Below, in pieces: positions 37,917 to 56,177 of a DNA stretch of 64,000 nucleotides. The stretch is from Ramazzottius varieornatus. Taxonomy: Eukaryota; Animalia; Tardigrada. The stretch's first letter is position 1. Each line of letters starts with the position of its first letter. The stretch is from contig BDGG01000002.1 of NCBI GenBank assembly GCA_001949185.1, positions 4,206,448 through 4,270,447 on the forward strand, given 5' to 3'. A program made the position numbers and the translations under genes. Below the pieces are notes generated by a model. It saw nothing but the letters and a program-made list of their open reading frames with translations. It was not told where the DNA came from and did no database searches.

Positions 37917-39357
37917 ATGACTTCCGCTTTCCGGCAACTACTGCGAAGACCTGCTGCATCATGGACACTAAAACAGAACAGCCGGTTCTTTTCAGAAAGC
38001 TCTTCTCCTTATTATGGAGGACACGACTTCGAAAAGACCTATGGTTATCAGTCCATCCGGAATTCAGCTAGCTTCGACTCCAAAGCAGCTTTGGTCGATA
38101 TGAGATCCGATACGATCACTATGCCGACCAAAGAAATGAGAGACGCAATGGCGAACGCCGTTGTGGGAGACGACGTGTACTACGAGGACCCGACAGTGAT
38201 CCAGTTAGAAAGAAAGGCCGCGGAAATGTTCGGCATGGAGTCTTCGTTGTTTGTGCCATCCGGAACCATGGGAAACCTCATTGCTGTCTTGATTCACTGT
38301 AAATCGCGTGGAAGTGAAGTGATCGTCGGGGACAAGGCCCATATTTTCAAGTACGAGCAGGGCGGGGTCGCACAGTTTGGTGGAGTTCACGTGAAAACCA
38401 TTCCCAACTTACCGAACGGAGGTTTCGAGATCAGGGATGTAATCGCTGCTACTCGATCAGAGGATGTCCACTTCCCACGGACCGCAGCACTCTGCTTGGA
38501 GAACACCCATAACGTTTGCGGTGGCAAGGTCCTATCGTTATCGTTTATAGACCAGGTAGCAGCGTAGTAAGAGGCGTGAATGCATGTCGGCCACGATGGA
38601 TGAATCGGCCACCCATCAAGTTCCTACGTGACACAAGCGGGGTATGAGGGGTGACCGATTCATCCTTTTTGCCTCAACTAGCGTATCAAATCTTCACTGT
38701 TCTATTCATAAAGTCTGTTATTTTCAGGTGACGAAAGCAGCCAAAGATAATGGCATTCCAGCTATTCACATGGACGGAGCTCGTATTTTCAATGCCGCTG
38801 TCGCTCTAAAGGCTTCTGCTTCCCGACTGCTGAGGGATATCGACTCCGTTAGCGCTTGCCTTTCGAAGGGTCTCTGCGCACCCGTTGGATCCCTCGTAGC
38901 CGGAAGTGACAAGTTCATCTACGAAGCTCGGCGGTTACGGAAAGCTCTCGGTGGTGGAATGCGTCAAGTGGGGCATGTTGCGGCAGCTGGGTTGATCGCC
39001 ATAGAGAGCATGGTGGACAGGCTGGAACTGGATCATCGACGTGCTCGTCGTTTGGCCCAGGCCATCACAGACTTAGAATGCCCGTTTTTTACGGTCGACG
39101 TGGACGGCGTGCATTCCAATATCGTCATGATTGATCTACCAAGTCCAGATCGGCTGACACCGTTGCAGTTTTGCCAGAGATTAGTATCGGTGACGGAAGC
39201 GGAGAAGAAAGCGTGCGGAGGACATTCCGCTTATGTACGCTTCCTTCCATTCAGTGACACGGTTACACGTGCCGTTGTTAACAATAATCTGTCCGAAGAA
39301 GATATCGAACGCGTAATAGCCAAACTTGAGTTCCTGTCTAGAGAGATAAGTACCTGA
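37917..39357 (+). CDS. Low-specificity L-threonine aldolase, probable mitochondrial presequence
   Basis: DMRSDTIT, GDDVYYEDP, PSGTMGN, LENTHN, HMDGARIFNA and CLSKGLCAPVGS (PLP lysine). One intron ~38556-38727. Arg-rich, acid-free N-terminus. Confidence 0.95.
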
Positions 39358-39646: not shown

Positions 39647-42600
39647 TCAAAAGTTAGGAAGTAAACTACCTGTAGCAGGCGGCTGTGGCTTGGTAGGCTG
39701 GTACATACATAAGTAGCAGTCTTCGAAGAAGCGATTGACGGGAGTAGGCAACTGTTCGTTCCGCTCAAGTATGCCCATCAGCTTCTTATGCCCATCTTCT
39801 TGCAAGTACTCGTTCACTTCTGGACAAAGAGTTACTTCCGGAATGTTGAAACCAGCGTTACCTTCACCCCCTTCGCGATCCGCCATCGAGTCCATGAAGT
39901 GCCAGACATCCGAGCCATCCTTGGCGAACGTCACATAGTGGCTAGTCTTGATACAGAGAACTGCGAAAAGCTCCATTGTTAGGCGACCTTGACTAATGGA
40001 TGGGTCGCTGGAGATGGTCAGTTCTTTAGAGTGGTGGTTTGGATGCTTCTTGTGACGGACGGAGAAACATGTACGGCAGAAGGCCATGGAACTCAGCAGA
40101 GACGGGCTGATCTCTTCGTTGTCTTTCCATTTGAAGCAGTCACGGCATTCCAACTCTGCCTGGTTATCTTGACAGAGGCTGCAGATTCGGGGAGCGCCGA
40201 TCACTGCGTCGGTCACGTCTATGATGGGACTTGGTAAAATCAGGCGGTACATCTTGTATTGTGCACCGGAGCGTGGTGTCTGTAGAATCAAACATCGAGG
40301 CGCCTAAAGAAGAAAAATACACATTCGGGTTCTGTACCGGATTGATAGAACACAAACAGTATGCCGGTAAACACGCGCTTATGCAGCGCTATTCTTTCTG
40401 TACCTGCATACACCATACACCGTATTCACCATTATACTGGGTTATGTAGGTGGACGAGGTAACTGATTGACACGAGGAAGGTAGATAGCTCTGCGTTTCA
40501 TCTACCTGCATACGCTGACCATCAAGCTTCCCATTATCTAAGGTATGCAGTTGAATAAGGTACGGTACCACGTTATAACAAGATTTTTGCGTAGTCTAAC
40601 AGATCGAAACAAAGCCGCACTGATAAAACTCTGCAAAATTACCTCTTTGAATCGTACATCTGCATCGACCAGTGACTGATCAAACAGTTCTTGGATAGTT
40701 GGGATTGGCTTCGACTGGTTCTTCTCGACAAAGAGAGTATACCAGTTGGCGTCCAGTGTGGACATCTTTAGCAACGGATCGATCGTTAGGATGTGCTCCA
40801 GAAGGGTGTGAAGTAATTCTTCCGGGTCCTTTTCTCTGTCCGTCAAGCCTTCCACATCGCCAAAACTGTCCAGAAGCTCCCGTAGTTCCATCATATTCTC
40901 ACTGTTCACAAAAAAGTCTTTCTGAAGCGGGGCAACGATCCCATCGCGCAAAACTTCCTGCAGTAATTATAAGAACACTTGTTGGTTTCATTCAGCGACG
41001 CTTCTTATTGTTTTCTCCACACAGTTTAAACTTACCTGAACTTCTTCATAACCTTGTATGTTGCCTTTTGAGCGTGGGCGTTGTAGGATCTCTTCGAAAA
41101 CGTTGGAGAAAGCGAACATGCCGAACAAGGTGGCGTCCATGTAGCATGAGTTTTTATGTCCCTGGATTCCACGGTTCCTCCCCGAAGTCTTAGCGTGATC
41201 GATCTGTCTCAGAACGGCGACAGATCGAGGTGGTGCTGGTTTGCCTACGTTCAGTTCCCGGGCCACGGAAAGTCTACCTTTCCTTCCTATAAACACCTCA
41301 AACCATCAGCTGCTGCAAAACGAGGTTTCAATTGAACAGACAGAGTATACTTCAAGTGGCTGATCTAACAAATACTTCGATATTAACACGTAAGACCCAG
41401 GCAAACACAACAACAAGATCATTTTCCAAGTGGCGCGCACTTTTAGCCAGTGACACTGGAAAGGTACGCCATTTGGTACGCCATTTGTCGAGCTTGCTCG
41501 CCAAGCTCTCATAGTATGATCGGTTACGAACCTCCAAACTGAGGTGCTGCCACACGAGTTATCCCTTCGCTCACATTCTCATTACGATCGTGTCGGACCA
41601 TGGCGTCATTCCGAGTGGTGATTTCCTCCTGTCGCTGAACAACAGGCACTTCCGGTGAAGGGTTCGGGTGGACCGACATGGCTTCTCTGACTAACAACTT
41701 GGCGTTATTGGCCTCCTCGTCTGGGTTGTAAAACTTAGTATGCGATTTGGAACGAGAGACATTAAAGCACCCAACAGCTTTCTCACTCGAGTCGTTTTGA
41801 AATGGCTGGCCATGCCTTCGATCTCCAGACGGACTTCTTCGCGGTTGTGGTGTGTCAGCAAGCATGTTCAACTGCGCATCGGCTCGTCGAGCTGGCCGAG
41901 TCTCCCGCTGAGACTCGGATTGTTGGTGTGGGAATCTTACGGCCAATCGTTCACTCACTTCGGGAGTTACCTCCACACCAGTTGAACGGACAGAAGACAC
42001 CGAGGACGCGGACGATGCAGTGGAAGGATAGCTTGCCGTGGATGACACACTGGGCGCGGAAGGGTAAGCAGCCGGAGCCGGAGGTTTCTTGACTATGTCG
42101 CTGTAGCTTGGCTGGCGAACGAAGCCGTTACTCTGGCCTGCCTGAATCTTCACGGGGCCCTGCTTGGACACCACCAGCTTCTTTTCTTCCTCAGCGTTCC
42201 ACTGGACCGTTGGCTCATCTGGCAACAGCGTAAGGTAAGCCAGCGGGACGTAACTGGCAAAACCTGGCCTGGAGACGAACAGCTGGGTACCGTCGTATAG
42301 TCCTGTTCCGTGTCCCAGAGAGAAATCCTACATGGAATCCCATTGGGTTACATGGATGGCACATAACAAAAGCTAGGTTAGTTAACTTTTCGTATCAACT
42401 TTGGTAGGTAAGCTTACCAATTCTAGTCCGGCGTACAGTTTCGAGTCTCGAGCGTTGTTATCCAGATACCCAATCCACCGCACTGATCCCACCATCTTGG
42501 TTCCTGTATCATCGAAGTAATACACTCGACTGTCAAGCTTAATATCCGCACCTTGGAGGGCGCCGATAGGGACAGCTTCAGGAACGCCTTTGATGGTGTT

Positions 42601-43500
42601 TGAGTCTTTTGCTGGTTGACGGTCCTGTTTCACGCTGTCCAGTAAGTGGGAACCGAGGTTGACGGTCGAAGTGGCCAAGTTCGTCATAGCAGGTAGCAAT
42701 CCTATTTTACTCAACGCCTTCTTGCTTTCCTCCTTTATGTTCTTCACGATTGGCATGTGCTTAACCTCACCATCGGCTGGAAAGGTAGGGTAAATTCCGT
42801 TGGTGGTTCCCGGTGAAGTTGAACGACGACCACCGGATGCAAAATACGAAGAAGGGCTATCGACTATGTTGATCATCCGTTTGCTGGGATCCATGCCATT
42901 GGCATTCCGGTCTGCAACGGACTCTCTCGGTGGTGAGATGTGCTCGACGGTGACAAAGAGACCGGCTCCAGCTCTGCAGCGAAAGTAAGGATGACCATTG
43001 AAGCTTCCATCGCAATCGCCATGACCAACGTGATGAGGCAGCTCCAGACCGAAGTAAATTCCGGCTCTTTTGCCTTTCACAGGTCCAACATACCGCACGA
43101 CGCCAGGGTATGACATGTCGTGGAAAGCTACCGTGACAAGAGAGTCTGACTGACATGTGGAGGCGAAGTTCAAGCGCTTACTGGCTAAAAGCTTGATTCG
43201 CGTCGAATAGTCCAGTACCGGAAGGAGGAGATCCACGGCGAAGGTGCCAATGTTCGTGACATCTTTAATGCTGCATTCGAGAAGCACGTCTCTGCGCTCG
43301 ATCGATATGAGGGACAGCTGTTCTTGTCCCGGTCGAAAGTCCTCGACAACACACACTTCTTCGAAAATCTCTCCAGGATGAACCTTTGTGGAGGCAGCCG
43401 AGACAGCTCGGTCCGAAACCAACGCTTTCGCCACCAGGCTGTTGATGACAATAAACTTTCTGTTGGACGCCGGTGATGCTTGAGCGTTCCTGGCAGCCAT
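39647..43500 (-). CDS. CYLD: Ubiquitin carboxyl-terminal hydrolase CYLD (2 CAP-Gly + USP with B-box)
   Basis: CAP-Gly motifs GVVRYVG..IYFGLEL..GDCDG..YFRC and LYAGLEL|DFSLGHG. USP Cys box GIQGHKNSCYMDATLF, EKDPEE, B-box CSLC..CRDC..FCRTC..H, and His box LFAVLCIKTSHYV..MDSMADR. Confidence 0.95.
41427..41475. repeat. Palindromic repeat core, CYLD intron
   Basis: caagtggcgcgc...gtacgccatttg. Confidence 0.75.
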
Positions 43501-47730: not shown

Positions 47731-49371
47731 TTACTTCTTGTTGTATTCATCGTTGATACGTCGACCGATGATTAGTCTCCGAATCTCACTAGTTCCCGCT
47801 CCGATCTCGTAAAGTTTGGCGTCCCGAAGATACCTTCCGGTGGGGTAGTCGTTGATATAGCCGTTGCCTCCAAGTGCCTGGATGGCCTGAAGCGCGACTT
47901 GCGTTCCTGATTCTGCCGACTTCAGTATAGCCGCAGCGCAGTCTTTCGAACTAGTGTGTCCGGCATCATAAGCCTTGGCCACGTTGTAGACGAAGGACCG
48001 ACAAACAGCCAGCTCTGTGTACATGTCAGCTATCTTCCCTTGCATTAACTGCCGCGAAAAATAAAGTATCAATGACACATTTGACAAGAATGTTTTCCCA
48101 AGTGGCGCATGTTTTCAGTGTCATTGGCAGAGAGCATGCGTCGCTTTGGAACCCGAACCTGACGAACTTTTCAAGTCCGCTTTGAAGAACTGTGATTGTA
48201 GTGGTCTTAGAACCCCATAAAAGGTGAAAAAACTTCACAGGAACAAACTTAATGAGGCTGAAGTATCCACCTGAAAGGTGCCAATCTGTTGATCGAACTG
48301 TTTCCGGTCGTGCACGTAGTCGAATGCGGTGTCACAGCAGGCCTGCATGATGCCCAGAGGTCCGCCCGAAAGAACTAGCCGCTCAACATCCAGACCCGAC
48401 ATCAAAACGTACACGCCCTTATTTAGCTGTCCAAGAATATTTGCAGCGGGGACTTTGCAGTCCTCGAAGATGAGCTCGCAAGTGTTAGAGCCACGCATGC
48501 CGAGTTTGTCCAGTTTCTGTGCCGTTCGGAAACCTGCCATTCCTTTCTCAATTAGGAAAGCCGTGATGGAGTGTTGTGGTTTCGCGCTTATATCGGTCTT
48601 TGCATACACCACAAGAACTTCAGCGTCGGGACCATTTGTGATCCAGAACTTGTTTCCGTTGAGAATGTAACTGTCCCCGTCCTTCTTTGCGGATGTCCGC
48701 ATCGACACCACGTCCGAACCGCTACCTGGTTCGCTCATGGCCAGCGCACCCATGTGTTCCCCACCGATAAGCTTATAAAGAAGACCGGTTATTCCGAGCA
48801 ACTACAACAAAGACAATGGTCGTACCTTGGGCAGATATTTCTCCTTCTGTTCGTCGGTTCCATGACGAACGATCTGGTTAACGCAGAGATTTGAATGAGC
48901 TCCATAGCTCAGACCGATTCCTCCACTAGCACGAGACAACTCTTCTTGTGCAATAACGTGAGCAAGGTAACCAAGATCCAATCCTCCGTATTTTTCTAGA
49001 ACGAAAAAGCAACAGGTGTATTCTCTTGCTAATTGATATGCAGCGGAAGGCACTTTCAGTGCATTCTTCTCATCGACTCCCTAACCTGGCGCAGTGATGC
49101 CGAGAAGTCCTAGCTCCCCAAGCTGCTTCCAGAAGGTCCGAAGGTTGTCGAACTTGTTGGTGGTGTCGATGGTTGCAGCATGGGGAGCAAGTTCCTTCTG
49201 AGCAAAGCGGAAGACGGTTTCGCGTAGTTCATGCTGATCCTCGTTGAGGCCGAACAGCTTGTCATCTATGGGATAATAGCTACCAAGCAGACGCACCCAT
49301 CCGTATTGCTTGTCCGGCAGGAGTGGCCTGAGTAATTTGGAGGACAATTTGCGACAGACAAGGGAAGACAT
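47731..49371 (-). CDS. IVD: Isovaleryl-CoA dehydrogenase, mitochondrial
   Basis: [56 protein letters not shown] and [32 protein letters not shown]. Confidence 0.97.
48099..48148. repeat. Palindromic repeat core, IVD intron
   Basis: caagtggcgcat...atgcgtcgctttg. Confidence 0.7.
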
Positions 49372-50178
49372 CTTTCGAAATCGTAAGTGAACTGGACTAA
49401 CACGAGTACTTGAGCGGAACTTCCGGTTGATCAATTTTCCAAAATAGAAATCAGCTGATCAGTGATCAATAGTCCTCCTCACGACGAGCTGTTTATGTCG
49501 GAAAATGTTGTTTTAAAATTTGAGTTTGCTTGATCAACGGAAATTAGTCGTGAGTGAGGCAAAATTGCGTTTTTCGAAAGTCTCGGATATGGGAGCGGAA
49601 ATGCGCGACTCTTGCGGGGTAGGTTTGTAGGCAAACTTTGCCTCCTGACTAGGCTGAAACTCATGGTTTTCTCTCTGGCTAGTCTCTGTCTGTCGATATC
49701 CCCGACACTAATAGATATCAAGAAGCCCATACGTGAAACGGTATCTCGCAACGTCAAGCACTGTGCAGACAGAGCTCAGCTGACAAATGAAAATTTGAAA
49801 TTTTGAGTCAAGTGTGCAGAGAATAATCCGTTTTCGCTTTCAAGATAAGCTACTCGAGTAGCTTATCTTGAAAGCGAAACTTCGTAATCCACTTTCAAGA
49901 TCAACACAATCAACGGAGTTTTACGGCCTGTCGTGCGGAGGACTGCATTCAGCCGTTACTGCTAGAAGTTCTTTCTTCCCTCATCGCCATTTTGCTCTTG
50001 ATCCTCGTCGGAATATTCTCGGCTATTTCAGAGCTGGCTTTTTCTTTGGAAATCAGGCAATTGCAGAAACAATCCTACAACGCTCCTCGGTACTTCATGC
50101 AGCTTCATTTCAGATTCTAATGCGGGAGATGTGAGAGAGCGGTACATTGGATTCGACTGACCGGACTCACCGACAAGA

Positions 50179-53100
50179 ATGACTGGCGGAACGTCCCTTG
50201 CTGCCAGATTTATCCTAACTAGGGACACGCCGCTAGCGGAAAACCAAGGTGCCTTGCTACCCGCGGGATCTCTTGTACAAGAGATAAAGAACGGCTCAGA
50301 CAAGCCAAATCAGCTGTTGCTGCAGTCTCTGGAAGATCACCCCAATGCAACAGGTGGACAAGCTTTCGTTCTTGTTCCTGTTGATCAGCTGTGCGAAGTT
50401 AGCAAGATCTTTGCCGAGCTACTCGCTGCGGAAAAGAACCACACAGCTCGATTGGTAGTCTGCCGGGACGAGAACTGGTTGGAAGAAGCCTTGCATATCG
50501 ATCCCGATTCGGAAGTACTCGTTTCGTTTGGGCAGCTACAGATGCTGGGCATTGTGCACTGGATCGGTGCTCTGCCCAGTCTTCGTGGAAAGTGGTTCGG
50601 GGTAGAGATATATCCTTCGGAGCTGATCGACGTAACTCGATATGTCCAGGGAAACGATGGATCGCCTATGTTCCAGTGTGTTGCTGGTTTCGGTGTCTAT
50701 GTGGCTGTCACTCGGCTTCGCCTGGCTGATGCCTGTCTCGACGCACCGTTCCCGAAAAGAGCTAAAGGAAAAAAACCATTCTCTGTTCGACCGACCAAGG
50801 CTTCTGAGATCGTAGCCGCGAAGAATAATCTCACGAGCTGTAAGTGTCATTCGCAGTACCGTAGGTCCTGCAATGTTAAGAACAACGGCTTCTTTTTCAG
50901 CTCATACAAACGGCAACAGTGGCATGAGTGGTCAAATTTCGTCCGTGTTTGATGAAGCTATGGAATGGACCGATCAGCCTACTTCTGACAATACTCCGTT
51001 GGCCGTGAACGATCGTGTGGTGTGGTTCGGAGGAGACAAGCCCGCACGGGGGACGGTTGTTTACGTTGGTAAAGTCAGCAAAAAAAAGTCCGGCGTCGCT
51101 TTGGAATTCGTAAATCTCTTATCTCTTTCTGGACAACATGTGTACATCCGTCCAACTGCTGTTTACTTCCTAGGATGAGGCCATTGGGGACAAGAAATTC
51201 ACAGGGATGAACAACGAACACTGTCTGTTCACGGTGGCTGACGGGCACGGGAAACTTGTCGAGTTGGGTGAAGTAGTGCGCGAGAAGGATTACGGGTTTG
51301 AGGAGGCTCCGCAGGTACAGACGGCAAAGACTAGCATGAGTGGGACAGGTAGCGAACCCTCTTCTAGTGGGGTTCCTCGATTAGCAGATCGAGTTGTCTG
51401 GTACAGCCCCGAGGGAGAAGTTCGCGGCCAAATCGCGTACATCGGGAAGGTACCTGGGGAAGAAGGAGAGAAACTTGGGTTACGTTTGGTATGAAATCTT
51501 TCCGTTCAGATTATCATACGAGTTTGGCTTACACAGTGCTTCGTTGTTTCAGGACGAACAAAAGGGGGATAAGAGGTTCCGTGGTGAAGTCAACGGTAAG
51601 GACCTTTTCCACTGCGGTCCTGGGTACGGCGCGATCGTCGAGTTTGACGACGTCATCTTGGAGAAAGTGTATGATAATGCTGAAGGCAAAGAACAGGGGC
51701 TTAGTGAAGTAGCTGTTCACGATAAGATCAACTGGCTGAACCCTGAAGATGGGAAGTACGAAGAGGGAACCGTCCGTTACATCGGTGACGTCGGCAAGAA
51801 GAAGGAAGACAGGATACGGATGGTTGGAATCGAGTTTGTAAGTCAAGACAATTTCACAGCTGGCTTAGAAGGAACACAGAAATTTAGAGACAACAGTCTT
51901 GTGGCAACAGTGAGAAGAAACTTTACATTGTTGCAGGTGAATCCATGTGGGCAGCTGGGCTGGGCAGGACGAGCCTACAAAGAACAGCTGTTCAAGGTGA
52001 AGCAGAATCACGGCATGTTGGTGTCGTTGGCGGAAATGACAGCAGGGCGAAATGTCGTCTGGTTCACAAAGGATGAGTACAACCGACAGAAACGAGAAAT
52101 GGCGACCAAAGCGGAGGAACCGGTCAAGATGCAAAGTAAGCAAATCAACCCGGTCGTTCCTGATGGCAAGACTGCAGCGCCGAGGAAGCCTGCGCCGAAA
52201 CAAGTGACGAAAGAGAATGATTTCATTCAGGCCTTTACCTCGATGGACAAGTACGAAGAATTCACGGTGGGTCAGCGCGTTCTTGTCGTTTCAAAGAAGG
52301 CTGGAGAAGCTGCTCGACTTGGGAAGATTCTGTGGATGGGCACGATCGCAGCAATCACCGGGCCAGCAGTTCTTTGCGGACTGGAAATGGTAATTTTTGA
52401 GCGACTAATGAAACGTGAGGTGGGGCAAACAAACTCGACAAGACTGTTTTCCCAAGTGGCGCACGTTCTCGGTGTTATTGACTGAAAGTGTGCGCCACTT
52501 GGAAGAACCATCTTGTCGAGTTTGTTTGAGCTCTATCCTTTTGAAAGCCGAATGGAAAAAGCGAAAGTGTATGAACCAGTTTTCTGATTTATCTTTCAGG
52601 ATGAAAGCGTCGGCTCGGAGGAGAACGTTACTTACTGCGGTTACGCCGGAAACGAGAAGAGAGGGTTCGTCGAGGTCTACGCCTGCAAACCGGGCCATGG
52701 ACAGTTTGTCTCCATCAAGGACGTCATCGCGGCGGATGTCGCAGATATGGGTGGTCACGCTCAGTCAGAACCCATGAGCGAGAACGGAGGATGGCAGCAC
52801 GTCGGGAAAAAACAAGGAGCTAACCCCGCTCATGCAGTTCGACTGCACGAAACTCTGACGTTCGAGCGAAACCAACCACCGCTACATTCCATTCGGCACC
52901 TGGTTCCCTCCCAACAGCCCTCAGTCCCTTCTCATCAGCCAGCGTGGCAAAACAATTCAGGAATGGGTTTCGTTCCTCAAAACAACAACTGTAGTCCGTT
53001 TGCTGTTGGTCCTTTCAGGCCACCGTTCTCACCGGCTGTGCAAAGCCTGCCGATGGAGCAGACGGGGAACAGAACATGGATGGATCATTCCTACAGACAG

Positions 53101-56100
53101 CAGCAGCAACAACAACCGCCGCCGCGTCTGCAGTTACGTCAGGAAGCTCTTACGTTCATCGGAAACAAGCCGGTCAAAGGAGTGGTAGTGTGGATTGGTC
53201 AGCCACATTTCGCTCCTCAACAGCTTTACGTCGGGCTGATGATGGTAAACCAGGCTTAGACCATCAAAGACAGTAGTGTTCGATAATTGATGTGTTCGTA
53301 TTGAATGATGTAAATGTTCCGTTGAACTGAATCTTTTTTGGTCACAGTTGCAAGCTGGCGATGGGACAAATGCTGGCGCGAATGGATGGGTCGATGGATA
53401 TCACTACTTCGAATGTCTGCCTAATTGCGGCCTGATGTGCTTGGCGGATGAAGTCCATTCCATGGATTTGCCACAAGCGCAACAGCAGTTCTCACCGGCA
53501 CTTTCTCCCGTAGCTCAAGCACCTGCTAGATTCGGCTTTGCTCACCAGGCAAGTGGCTCTCCACCAGCAGCCTACCATCCTACTCGACCTGCTGCTCCGG
53601 TCCAGGTAGCGCCTGTACAGCGTCCACCTGTACAGTCCGAAGAAAGTGTCCGAGCTGCCATCCAAGAAGCAGACGTAAGATTTCGGAGGCCTATCTTTTC
53701 GAGACGAAAATGATTAATTTGCTGGGCTTTTCTCCAGAGGCTTGAGCGACTGGAGAACGAGAGAAAGTCTCACGTGGCTATTTTCCAAACCCTTGCCAGT
53801 GAAGAACTAGGTGGTGTGGAAGTGACCGTGGAGCTCCCAGGGACCAAAGGGTTCGTGAAGTTTTGTCCCAGACCGAAGCCGTTTGATGGAGAACAAGAGT
53901 TCAGCGTTACGACTTTGGTCATGCCAGTGGCTGATGGTAATGGAAACGCCGGGTTCGAGCCACGAAAACAGAAGCGATCGATCGAGTACTTGCCTCCAGT
54001 CTTCCTTCACTTCCAGCTGACGGAAGGCTTTCCTGAGAAAATCCCGCCGACGTATCAAGTGAAGTGCAACTGGCTCCCGAATGACAAGGTGAGAAATTTT
54101 ATCGACTTCATTAATGTTGCCACGGAATTTCGACATATTATTTGATGAAAACTTCTTGGTGAATGAAAATTCGAATAAATTTCGCAGCATGAAAATTGTC
54201 AATTCACCAGCATCGTTTTCCCCAGTGGCGTACCTTCTGAGCTAATAGCAATGAGAAAGTGCGCTACTCGTAATATCGGAACAATTTGGCAGAACTTGTT
54301 TGCCGACGTTACAGGTATGGACTAATATCGTAGTTCGTTTTCCGAAAAGTGCTTCACTTCCTGTCGTTGTGCTAATCGTTAACCGAAGTGTACTGAAATA
54401 CAACGAGGTATTTTGTTTTGTAGATTGACGTTCTTCGAGAAAGATTGGTGAAGTCATGGAAGGATAACGTCAGACAAGCTAATAAGAATATCCTCTTCGA
54501 AGCAACGAGAGTTCTCCGCTGCGACCTACTATCCATAGCTGGACTGGAATTCGGCATTGTCTACTACAGTCAAGCCTTGGCGGACTTTGTCGGCATTTTG
54601 GAGATCGAGCCAATTGCCGGTCGGTGCTTGTACGCTACCGACAAGGAAGTCCAGGATACCGTCAACCGCATCGTGAAGTTCGATGAAAAGACCCGCAAAG
54701 AGGCGCTCGAGAAGGACTTGGTTGAATGTCCGATCTGTGCATCGTCCTATGCACCGGCCGAAGTGAACATTTTTTCGACGACATGCTCGCACATGTTTTG
54801 TGTTGGCTGTGTGACCCAACATGTCAAGACTCAAGTGGAAGGCAACAACTGGGACAAGATACCGTGCATGCATGACGGCTGTGAAATCACGGCGCCTCTA
54901 CACGAGGTAAGACTAGCTAGTGGTTCTGGCCACTGGAAAAGCCGAGCAAAGGAGAAAAACCATTGTAGAGCGAGCAGTTTTACTTGTGACTCACAGTACG
55001 GTTCCCCAGTAAAATTTTTAATCGCCCCGATCAAGTGGCGTGTTTTTTTCAGTACTGTGTTTGCGATATCTGAAAGCTCGAAGAATCTGATCGTCCATTG
55101 AAATCTCGACAGACTCAAAAGGGCCTCGCTTCGCTCGACCTGATTATTGGGGAACTTGTAGACAAACTCGACCACAACGTTCTCCCAGCTGACGCATGCT
55201 ATCGGCCAACATCACTGAAGCCGAACGCCACTTGACAGGACAACGAAACCTGGCAAAAGTGATTTTTCCAAGTGGCGCACCCTATCAGCCGGTATCACAG
55301 AAAACGTGCGCCACTTGGGGAAAGTGATCTAGTTGAGTCTGTTTGCCGAGCTGAGCGAGCTCCTATTTGTTGACGAAAAACAAGATATCAAACTAAATGA
55401 AAAGTTATATCACTATGCTGGAAAAGTTCCTCAGGGGAATTCTGCTTTTGGGTTTTGCAGTTGAGTGATCTGGTTGAGCCGATCATCTTCGAGCAGCTGA
55501 ACAGGTACGTCAACGACAAATTCTACGATAAGATGGAAGATGTGAAGCGGTGTCCAAAGTGTAAGCACCCGGTGGTTTACGGAGCAGAAATGCTCAGTGC
55601 TGACCAGCGGTACATTACATGTCCGGATGACACTTGCGGCACCGAGTATTGTCCTCACTGCGGGAAGAGTGGACATGGCGATCAGCCTTGCCTGAATGAC
55701 GGTACAAGCGGATGAGATAATTCGCTGACGATCCTTACTTTTTCCATCTTTTGTATCTTTTAGTTCTACCGATACTTTTTTCTAGAACAAAAGGCACAGC
55801 TGGGGCAAGAGTACGAGAACGCTATGCCGGAAGGGAAGCTGGCTCTTGAGAAGCAATATGGCGCCGAGAACATTCGTCATGCCATCGAGGACTTCAAATC
55901 GGAAGAGATAATCCGGACCAAAATGAAGCTGTGCCCTAACTGTAAATGTCCCACCGAGGTAAGCTACACGGAAAGACCGTCCTTGATGCCTTTGTCTTGA
56001 TTTTTCGAAGTTACAAAGTGAAATAAATGTTTTTCGTAGAAAATCGAGGGTTGTAACAAGATGGCGTGTACCCGTTGTCACACTTTCTTCTGCTACATCT

Positions 56101-56177
56101 GCGGTGTCCAGTTGCCCAAGGAAAATCCTTATGGTCATTTCGATCGCGGTGGCTGCAGGAAGTTTGACCATTATTGA
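50179..56177 (+). CDS. Chimeric protein: CYLD-type N-terminal domain + 6 CAP-Gly + RNF14-like RWD-RING1-IBR-RING2 E3 ligase (~1426 aa, 12 exons)
   Basis: Exons 50179-50839, 50901-51109, 51174-51488, 51553-51837, 51937-52389, 52600-53244, 53348-53674, 53738-54088, 54424-54906, 55461-55701, 55786-55958 and 56040-56177 all join in frame via GT-AG. RWD: YLPPVFLHFQLTEGFPEKIPP. RING1: CPIC..CSHMFCVGC..CMHDGC. IBR: CPKC..CPDDTC..YCPHC..H..C. RING2: CPNC..KIEGCNKMACTRC..FCYIC..NPYGHF. Confidence 0.85.
52426..52528. repeat. Best-preserved copy of the palindromic repeat (MITE-like), intron of the chimeric gene
   Basis: caaacaaactcgacaaga..ttttcccaagtggcgcac-N25-gtgcgccacttggaagaa..tcttgtcgagtttgtttg. 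Confidence 0.88.
54222..54270. repeat. Palindromic repeat core, intron of the chimeric gene
   Basis: ccagtggcgtac...gtgcgctactcg. Confidence 0.7.
55186..55317. repeat. Two tandem palindromic repeat cores (55186-55234 and 55269-55317), intron of the chimeric gene
   Basis: cagctgacgcat...gaacgccacttg and caagtggcgcac...gtgcgccacttg. Confidence 0.8.

Follow-up and report, generated by a model that had tools for sequence, protein, structure and literature searches.

Introduction

RBR ubiquitin ligases form a small and heavily studied class of enzymes, in which the E2~Ub conjugate is held on RING1 and the ubiquitin is transferred to a cysteine of RING2 and then to the substrate. One of them, RNF14 (ARA54; Itt1 in yeast), is an RWD-RBR E3 that works with GCN1 on stalled ribosomes, and it has of late been recognised as a central factor in ribosome-stall and RNA-protein crosslink repair. 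CYLD, a deubiquitinase, combines CAP-Gly domains with a USP domain. Here we describe a gene of the tardigrade Ramazzottius varieornatus that joins elements of both kinds. It lies at 50179-56177 on the forward strand of a 64,000-nucleotide stretch of contig BDGG01000002.1 (assembly GCA_001949185.1, positions 4,206,448 to 4,270,447), which is called the window below and to which all coordinates given without a contig refer. Judging from the sequence, we consider it quite likely that this gene, hereafter the fusion, encodes one intact tardigrade protein of about 1426 amino acids (aa), a divergent RNF14-family RBR paralogue with a new CAP-Gly N-terminal extension, for which an origin from CYLD and a role in targeting may be supposed.

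With RNF14 the fusion shares the domain order, the cysteine of the GCNKM motif and the PYxHF tail. It differs by an N-terminal extension of about 900 residues, in which six CAP-Gly domains lie, and by a 5-aa insertion in the IBR domain, and it is very divergent: canonical RNF14 proteins match its exon 9 at only about 1e-5. With CYLD it shares the distance of CAP-Gly 1 from the N-terminus, the best match within the genome and a phase-0 intron placed after a GxEL motif; its GKNDG motifs show the degeneracy usual in the CAP-Gly domains of CYLD, while the number of CAP-Gly domains is six in the fusion, two in the CYLD of this tardigrade and three in human CYLD. No USP domain was found with Pfam in the fusion or its orthologues, whereas one is present in the CYLD gene at 39650-43500; the fusion thus does not qualify as a CYLD, and the N-terminal module is the most that the two can share.

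Our literature search returned no paper that meaningfully combines CAP-Gly with RBR or RNF14, and none on tardigrades. The statement in a preliminary description of this DNA that no CAP-Gly-RBR architecture is known thus holds for the literature searched; the proteins themselves are already in public databases under automatic names. We regard the fusion as probably an RNF14-family ligase with a novel N-terminal module, itself probably derived from CYLD, and not as a new class of system.

A single gene conserved in tardigrades

The coding region of the fusion consists of 12 exons with 4281 nucleotides (nt), or 1426 codons, and no internal stop, which is the same model as the continuous 12-exon open reading frame (ORF) of about 1426 aa proposed in the preliminary description. 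Its parts are as follows.

50179-56177, forward strand: entire coding region, with ATG at 50179 and TGA at 56175-56177
50179-50839, 50901-51109, 51174-51488 and 51553-51837, forward strand: exons 1 to 4
51937-52389, 52600-53244, 53348-53674 and 53738-54088, forward strand: exons 5 to 8
54424-54906, 55461-55701, 55786-55958 and 56040-56177, forward strand: exons 9 to 12
53675-53737, forward strand: intron 7, 63 nt, phase 0, GTAAGA...CCAG, connecting the CAP-Gly half to the RWD-RBR half

The splice sites were set by frame continuity and GT-AG signals, guided by the expected continuation of the CAP-Gly domains, and the Pfam and similarity searches reported below used individual exons or the database orthologues. 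All 11 introns are of the GT-AG type. The donors read GTAAxx in nine of them and GTATGA and GTGAGA in the remaining two, and a pyrimidine-rich tract precedes most of the acceptors.

When 1.84 billion representative proteins were scanned by HMMER with exon 9 as the query, just three matched strongly. Two were proteins of 1389 and 1573 aa, matched at residues 1046-1203 and 1142-1292, that is, at the same relative position. The shorter is Hypsibius exemplaris OQV25974.1 (UniProt A0A1W0XES8, 1389 aa), automatically named 'putative E3 ubiquitin-protein ligase RNF14'; the longer belongs to Paramacrobiotus metropolitanus, where the gene LOC129587832 has three isoforms of 1488-1584 aa named 'uncharacterized protein' (XP_055337738-40), XP_055337739.1 being the one matched and the other two measuring 1488 and 1584 aa, so that none is ligase-only. 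A 203-aa ENA fragment from a contig of 10318 bp, matched to the RING1 exon (40% identity, 5.7e-29), is much closer than any canonical RNF14 and probably represents the same fusion family in another species.

Both full-length orthologues carry CAP_GLY, RWD and IBR in Pfam, with or without a RING hit, the CAP_GLY score amounting to 153.8 bits over five domains in one and 117.7 bits over four in the other. They have the same full architecture as the fusion and are collinear with it. When the genome of the window was searched with the Hypsibius protein, residues 3-1388 of the latter matched one exon after another in order, the identity being 46% in exon 1 and 45% in the RING1 exon. In the two regions compared for both species, the N-terminal module and the exon of RING1, the identity is 45-49% for Hypsibius and 38-43% for Paramacrobiotus, and some exons are as low as 33%. 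The Paramacrobiotus protein has a longer C-terminal tail, extending about 100 aa past RING2, and seven CAP-Gly repeats are apparent in it against six here and in Hypsibius; the number of repeats seems to vary between tardigrade lineages.

Homologue searches with the RBR part and with the N-terminal part of the Hypsibius protein returned no more fusion proteins, these searches being word-based and having missed the Paramacrobiotus orthologue as well. In the protein-database searches, which had limited sensitivity, the combination of CAP-Gly with RWD-RBR was not found outside tardigrades, and the fusion appears to be specific to this phylum.

The point at which a single gene might be doubted is intron 7. 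Two genes, one for a CAP-Gly protein and one for a short RNF14 paralogue, could have been merged by misreading an intergenic stretch as a 63-bp intron, and retention of this intron would indeed end the CAP-Gly frame at a stop at 53711-53713. We find this very improbable. The annotated models of two other species cover both halves, including all three Paramacrobiotus isoforms (1488-1584 aa), and the roughly 70-codon Pro-rich linker remains open. Past the stop at 53711-53713 no ATG occurs before the RWD domain begins, and the peptide across the junction of exons 7 and 8, ...SVRAAIQEAD / RLERLENERKSHVAIF..., is continuous and conserved in the Hypsibius and Paramacrobiotus orthologues as one unbroken stretch made up of about 10 final aa of exon 7 and the initial residues of exon 8. 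The model and the orthologue peptides alike confirm that the phase-0 intron at 53675-53737 joins the halves in frame, as had been proposed. Since the orthologues of two species are collinear and full-length and the peptide over the 63-bp intron is conserved, the case is strong that the fusion is a single intact gene spanning both halves, conserved at full length in two other tardigrade species.

The ligase half

The C-terminal ~460 aa of the fusion follow the complete RNF14 plan, with RWD, RING1, IBR, a helical linker, RING2 with the catalytic cysteine and the PYxHF tail.

53738-54560, forward strand: RWD domain, in exon 8 and the start of exon 9, with the intron 54089-54423 inside
54029-54049, forward strand: YPxxxP-like motif FPEKIPP, within the RWD domain as aligned to RNF14
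54727-54882, forward strand: RING1 (C3HC4), the E2-binding finger, in exon 9; Pfam zf-C3HC4 5.4e-06
55551-55691, forward strand: IBR domain, in exon 10; Pfam IBR 1.7e-08
55932-56141, forward strand: RING2 and tail, RING2 being 55932-55958 plus 56040-56102, cut by the intron 55959-56039
56052-56054, forward strand: codon of the catalytic cysteine, in the context KIEGCNKM
56127-56141, forward strand: RNF14-type tail motif PYGHF

The Pfam hits of the single exons were RWD for exon 8, zf-C3HC4 for exon 9 and IBR for both exon 10 and exon 12. Every Cys and His zinc ligand of RING1, IBR and RING2 is kept, and these ligands are conserved both against RNF14 proteins and in the three tardigrade species. 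The earlier reading of an intact RWD-RING1-IBR-RING2 series with its zinc ligands and GCNKM cysteine was therefore borne out by alignment and Pfam. In RNF14 the catalytic residue is Cys417 and the RWD domain is thought to dock on GCN1 (bioRxiv 10.1101/2022.03.21.485216); in the alignment the GCNKM cysteine of the fusion corresponds to this Cys417.

The kinship of this half was assessed with a profile made from nine metazoan RNF14 proteins. The two fusion orthologues scored 215 and 217 bits, each in one collinear hit running from the RWD domain to beyond RING2, and exons 8-12 of the fusion match consecutive portions of the same profile. Protist and algal RWD-RBR proteins scored 202-288 bits, Ariadne 78 in its best stretch, and RNF216-like RBR proteins only 34-47. 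The context of RING2 and the PYxHF motif at fixed spacing past it are common to the fusion and RNF14 proteins and absent from the other RBR proteins compared. The families of RNF216, parkin, ARIH1/2 and HOIL-1 have the RBR core in common with the fusion; unlike it, they have no RWD domain and no PYxHF tail. RNF216 is the closest solved structure by sequence (RING1-RING2, 9.4e-07), no RNF14 chain being among the matches to solved structures. As a lead only, the nearest ESM Atlas clusters to the Hypsibius protein all have RWD and IBR and none has CAP-Gly. The profile score, the RING2 context and the tail together agree with the RNF14-type ligase named in the preliminary description.

The RWD domain was examined along several lines. 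It aligns to that of RNF14 helix for helix, the YPxxxP-like motif included. An AlphaFold2 model of exon 8 (predicted local distance difference test, pLDDT, 70.7) gave top VIA matches rich in RWD and E2 (UBC) folds with Z of 5-6.4, namely Ubc9 (6.4), the RWD domains of C21orf6 (5.9) and GCN2 (5.8), and RWDD2 (5.8), with yeast GCN2, RWDD1, FANCL and Yih1 also among them. These Z values are middling and concern a partial domain, so they are taken as agreement and not as proof; Foldseek with the exon 8 model returned no significant match. Each line of evidence for an RWD domain directly N-terminal to the RBR is modest, and all of them agree.

Two results count against placing this half within the RNF14 family. 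The first is the weak Pfam signal of the RWD domain, which reaches 19.7-22.9 bits in the exon of the window, at or below the Pfam cut-off of 22.8; the orthologues reach 25.2 and 22.8 bits. The second is the phylogeny of the RBR proteins with RNF14, a maximum-likelihood tree of 19 rows computed with IQ-TREE, from which tardigrade RNF14 paralogues as whole proteins were left out. The two fusion orthologues appeared in it as a long-branch pair (stem 1.48) within an unresolved polytomy, and eight metazoan RNF14 proteins grouped without them with a support of 92/95. The tree, in other words, does not place the fusion, and it is on architecture, profile score and motifs that we assign the ligase half as a divergent member of the RNF14 family.

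Such divergence raises the thought that the fusion might be a paralogue in decay or without catalytic activity, retained as no more than a scaffolding pseudo-ligase. The very long branch and mostly divergent sequence, the low-complexity linkers and the degenerate GKNDG motifs of the CAP-Gly repeats would all fit such a view. It is hard to reconcile with 4281 nt free of stops and frameshifts, with the conservation of zinc ligands, catalytic cysteine and RNF14 tail in three species, and with the 60 positions of the N-terminal module that are invariant across these species; we accordingly hold decay or loss of catalysis to be highly unlikely.

The CAP-Gly half

The N-terminal ~900 aa of the fusion comprise a conserved leader and six CAP-Gly domains.

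50179-50839, forward strand: exon 1, with the conserved N-terminal region (aa 1 to about 105) followed by the uninterrupted CAP-Gly 1 at 50506-50718
50901-53674, forward strand: exons 2-7, with five more CAP-Gly domains, each cut by an intron, and the Pro/Gln/Ala-rich linker after them
51110-51173, 51489-51552, 51838-51936, 52390-52599 and 53245-53347, forward strand: phase-0 introns splitting CAP-Gly 2-6

CAP-Gly 1 (Pfam CAP_GLY at aa 121-179) is the sole CAP-Gly domain lying within one exon. When the other five are compared side by side, all prove to be interrupted in phase 0 right behind the G-x-E/M-L/F/M strand. The Pfam CAP_GLY scores of exons 1-7 are low, at 15-46 bits per exon piece, since an intron interrupts all the domains but the first, and the number of six was obtained by eye. 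Together, Pfam and inspection uphold the earlier count of one CYLD-aligned CAP-Gly domain and five further ones. The half-domain exon pieces found no useful match among solved structures.

Exon 1 is 43-46% identical to the N-termini of the orthologues, with RDENWLEEA among its invariant motifs. An AlphaFold2 model of this exon, built on a 4-row alignment, had a pLDDT of 42.5, too low to inform on the fold of the leader.

The GKNDG motif, which binds EEY/F tails, is wanting in most repeats of the fusion: in CAP-Gly 1 it reads GNDG, a form that Hypsibius has lost, and in the others it is degenerate, whereas the canonical CLIP-like CAP-Gly domains of the same genome do have GKNDG. Classical binding to tubulin or EB tails and plus-end tracking by this array are for that reason doubtful, though not excluded.

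Relationship to CYLD

The gene with which the CAP-Gly half has to be compared lies in the window as well, and its features and those of the gene between the two are these.

39650-43500, reverse strand: CYLD orthologue, with CAP-Gly 1, a split second CAP-Gly and USP
41170-41141 and 39946-39932, reverse strand: Cys box and His box of the CYLD USP domain
42328-42417, reverse strand: intron of the second CAP-Gly of CYLD, 90 nt, phase 0, straight after GLEL
47734-49434, reverse strand: acyl-CoA dehydrogenase gene (Pfam Acyl-CoA_dh_N, _M and _1), between CYLD and the fusion and given for context only

By these domain matches the gene at 39650-43500 is a true CYLD. Its first CAP-Gly has a Pfam CAP_GLY value of 1.9e-17 and is closest to human CYLD CAP-Gly 1 (1WHL), and its C-terminal piece matches the structure of the human CYLD USP domain (2VHF) at 1.6e-38. 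As an aside, only two CAP-Gly domains can be recognised in it, followed by a long Ser/Pro-rich linker. The second of them (VRWIG...AGLEL) may resemble human CAP-Gly 3 more than human CAP-Gly 2.

The fusion had been described as lying next to CYLD, which is too loose an expression: the distance is 6.7 kb, and the two genes stand head to head on opposite strands with the acyl-CoA dehydrogenase gene intervening. ORFs in the interval of 43.6-47.7 kb had no Pfam match, so that at least one gene separates CYLD from the fusion.

The first ~180 aa of the fusion had been aligned with the N-terminus of CYLD, and this alignment stands for its second part. BLASTP of exon 1 against the first exon of CYLD aligned 78 columns at 31% identity (E 9e-08), all in the region of the CAP-Gly domain, and similarity to CYLD is significant from about aa 79 to 180, which corresponds to CAP-Gly 1 and the ~30-40 residues preceding it. 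A profile of the three tardigrade N-termini was then run against every CAP-Gly locus found in the genome. It gave 36.8 bits (E 5e-11) for CYLD, with profile positions 72-189 matched to CYLD residues 80-193, and 13.3 bits for the next-best CAP-Gly locus. Default tblastn missed the match of the CAP-Gly pieces to CYLD, and phmmer and profile searches picked it up. Because of the difference between 36.8 bits and 13.3 bits, CAP-Gly 1 of the fusion and the ~30-40 residues upstream of it are, by sequence, specifically CYLD-like, and they occupy a collinear position.

A second resemblance concerns gene structure. The phase-0 intron after GxEL in the second CAP-Gly of CYLD occupies the same position as in all five split repeats of the fusion. 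At the other CAP-Gly loci of the genome that were examined no boundary was found there, the matches running through or breaking at profile positions of about 22-26, 39, 43 and 48.

Other comparisons speak against descent of the whole half from CYLD. The leader (the first ~108 aa) scored 0.8 bits against CYLD residues 1-118, a value equalled by 311 of 2000 shuffles, so the N-terminal ~80 residues of the proposed alignment did not hold. Repeats 2-6, modelled from the orthologues, gave 42.0 bits with CYLD CAP-Gly 1 and 40.9 bits with a CLIP-like domain. The case made by CAP-Gly 1, one intron position and proximity leaves a CYLD descent only partly supported, and the idea of a partial CYLD duplicate keeps CAP-Gly 1 and the intron position in its favour, while the leader is not CYLD-like and repeats 2-6 carry no CYLD-specific signal.

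The array might alternatively have come from another gene, a generic pair of CAP-Gly exons having been amplified ahead of an RNF14 paralogue, with the likeness to CYLD and the shared intron coincidental or ancient. The near-equal match of repeats 2-6 to CLIP-like and CYLD domains and the unlike leader agree with that, as does the comparison with solved structures, in which CAP-Gly 1 of the fusion is as near to KIF13B as to human CYLD or nearer; shuffling of CAP-Gly domains onto E3 ligases may, moreover, recur, to judge from another gene of the genome that combines CAP-Gly with RING (see below). Such an origin does not readily account for CYLD CAP-Gly 1 being the clear top match within the genome (36.8 against at most 13.3 bits), for the collinear placement of CAP-Gly 1 about 110-120 aa from the start in both proteins, for an after-GxEL phase-0 intron that, of the CAP-Gly loci examined, was observed in these two genes alone, or for the physical closeness of the two genes. 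We consider it possible and the less likely of the two. Given the CAP-Gly 1 match, the shared intron position and the 6.7-kb distance, we lean, by a modest measure, towards descent of the N-terminal half of the fusion from the 5' exons of CYLD.

Possible origin and mode of action

If the N-terminal half does stem from CYLD, a local copy of the 5' exons of the latter may have been joined by splicing to an RNF14 paralogue, with amplification of the exon pair of the split CAP-Gly as a later step. The catalytic module of RNF14 has been given here a wholly different targeting array, apparently borrowed from the nearby deubiquitinase gene. In the resulting enzyme RING1 would bind the charged E2, and ubiquitin would pass to the RING2 cysteine as a thioester and from there to the substrate, while the CAP-Gly array may provide localisation, substrate choice or regulation. 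As most of the repeats have no GKNDG motif for binding EEY/F tails, the array would be more likely to use non-canonical partners in the manner of CYLD than to engage in classical microtubule plus-end binding.

Ubiquitin itself could conceivably be such a partner. In human CYLD, CAP-Gly 2 and 3 bind ubiquitin and CAP-Gly 1 does not, and the change of Leu475 to Arg is reported to abolish binding of the CAP-Gly 3 type (PMC8511506). A ubiquitin-reading CAP-Gly array is conceivable by analogy with the two human domains that bind; we make no such claim for the fusion, since most of its repeats, as read by eye, have Arg at the position of human Leu475.

The preliminary description had seen in the two genes a candidate pair of writer and eraser, in which the CYLD-derived half directs the ligase to the partners or complexes of CYLD and the two enzymes act in opposition on shared substrates. 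Some of the observations given above would suit this: CAP-Gly 1 is specifically like CAP-Gly 1 of CYLD, the intron position is common to CAP-Gly 2 of CYLD, the genes are 6.7 kb apart, and an array of the CYLD type could in principle read ubiquitin, as CAP-Gly 2 and 3 do in the human protein (PMC8511506). Yet the genes are non-adjacent, on opposite strands and separated by an unrelated gene; the domain of human CYLD that corresponds to the CYLD-like CAP-Gly 1 is the one that does not bind ubiquitin, and the Arg found in most repeats is the substitution reported to abolish binding of the CAP-Gly 3 type (PMC8511506); and repeats 2-6 have no CYLD-specific sequence signal. The pair is in our judgement unlikely. 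The same low expectation applies to the wider proposal of a tardigrade ligase that would be targeted by the recognition module of CYLD itself, to the same partners and possibly to ubiquitin chains or microtubule clients of CYLD, that would write where CYLD erases and that would belong to an RNF14 family expanded in these stress-tolerant animals, by which GCN1/RNF14 quality control would be extended to new targets.

Should the array nevertheless share partners with CYLD, the two genes would offer a naturally occurring example of related modules that target a ligase on the one side and a deubiquitinase on the other. If the partners are not shared, the fusion would still be a clean example of exon shuffling and exon-pair amplification building a new E3 within one phylum. 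It is a lineage-restricted and conserved domain fusion in a much-studied enzyme family, and its practical value is modest for now.

Other RNF14-type and CAP-Gly loci

A separate canonical RNF14-like gene is present in the genome, together with further genes of the same type.

C3:3768659-3770319: likely canonical RNF14 and best candidate for it, with an RWD hit (E 2.8e-8) followed by RBR exons, covering RNF14 profile positions 61-466
C3:3387510-3390728: second RBR gene with the RNF14 tail
C58, C79 and C168 (small contigs) and C3:4394300-4399800, next to a gap of 3482 N: third type of RNF14-like locus

The C58, C79 and C168 copies appear to be unplaced pieces of the sequence missing from the gap on C3. 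A 1389-aa 'ORF' at C3:4394300-4399800 was rejected as an artefact of the same gap. An intron just before the KxxGCNKM stretch of RING2 is common to the fusion, the second RBR gene and the C58 copy, and the likely canonical RNF14 has an exon boundary near the same profile position. Since the genome holds these other RNF14-type genes, the fusion is best described, from its sequence, as an additional paralogue in an enlarged RNF14 family.

The genome also holds a second CAP-Gly + E3 gene, at C7:57101-58420, where an ORF with CAP_GLY (8.6e-13) is separated by 37 nt from the next ORF, which has a zf-C3HC4_3 RING (9.3e-14) at its end. Its CAP-Gly is the second-best match to the N-terminal profile of the fusion mentioned above (13.3 bits). 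With several RNF14-type genes and this second combination of CAP-Gly and RING, innovation among tardigrade ubiquitin ligases may merit a systematic survey. In the window, just past the 3' end of CYLD and on the other strand, there is also an ORF with a Beta_elim_lyase match (3e-40) at 38644-39354 on the forward strand.

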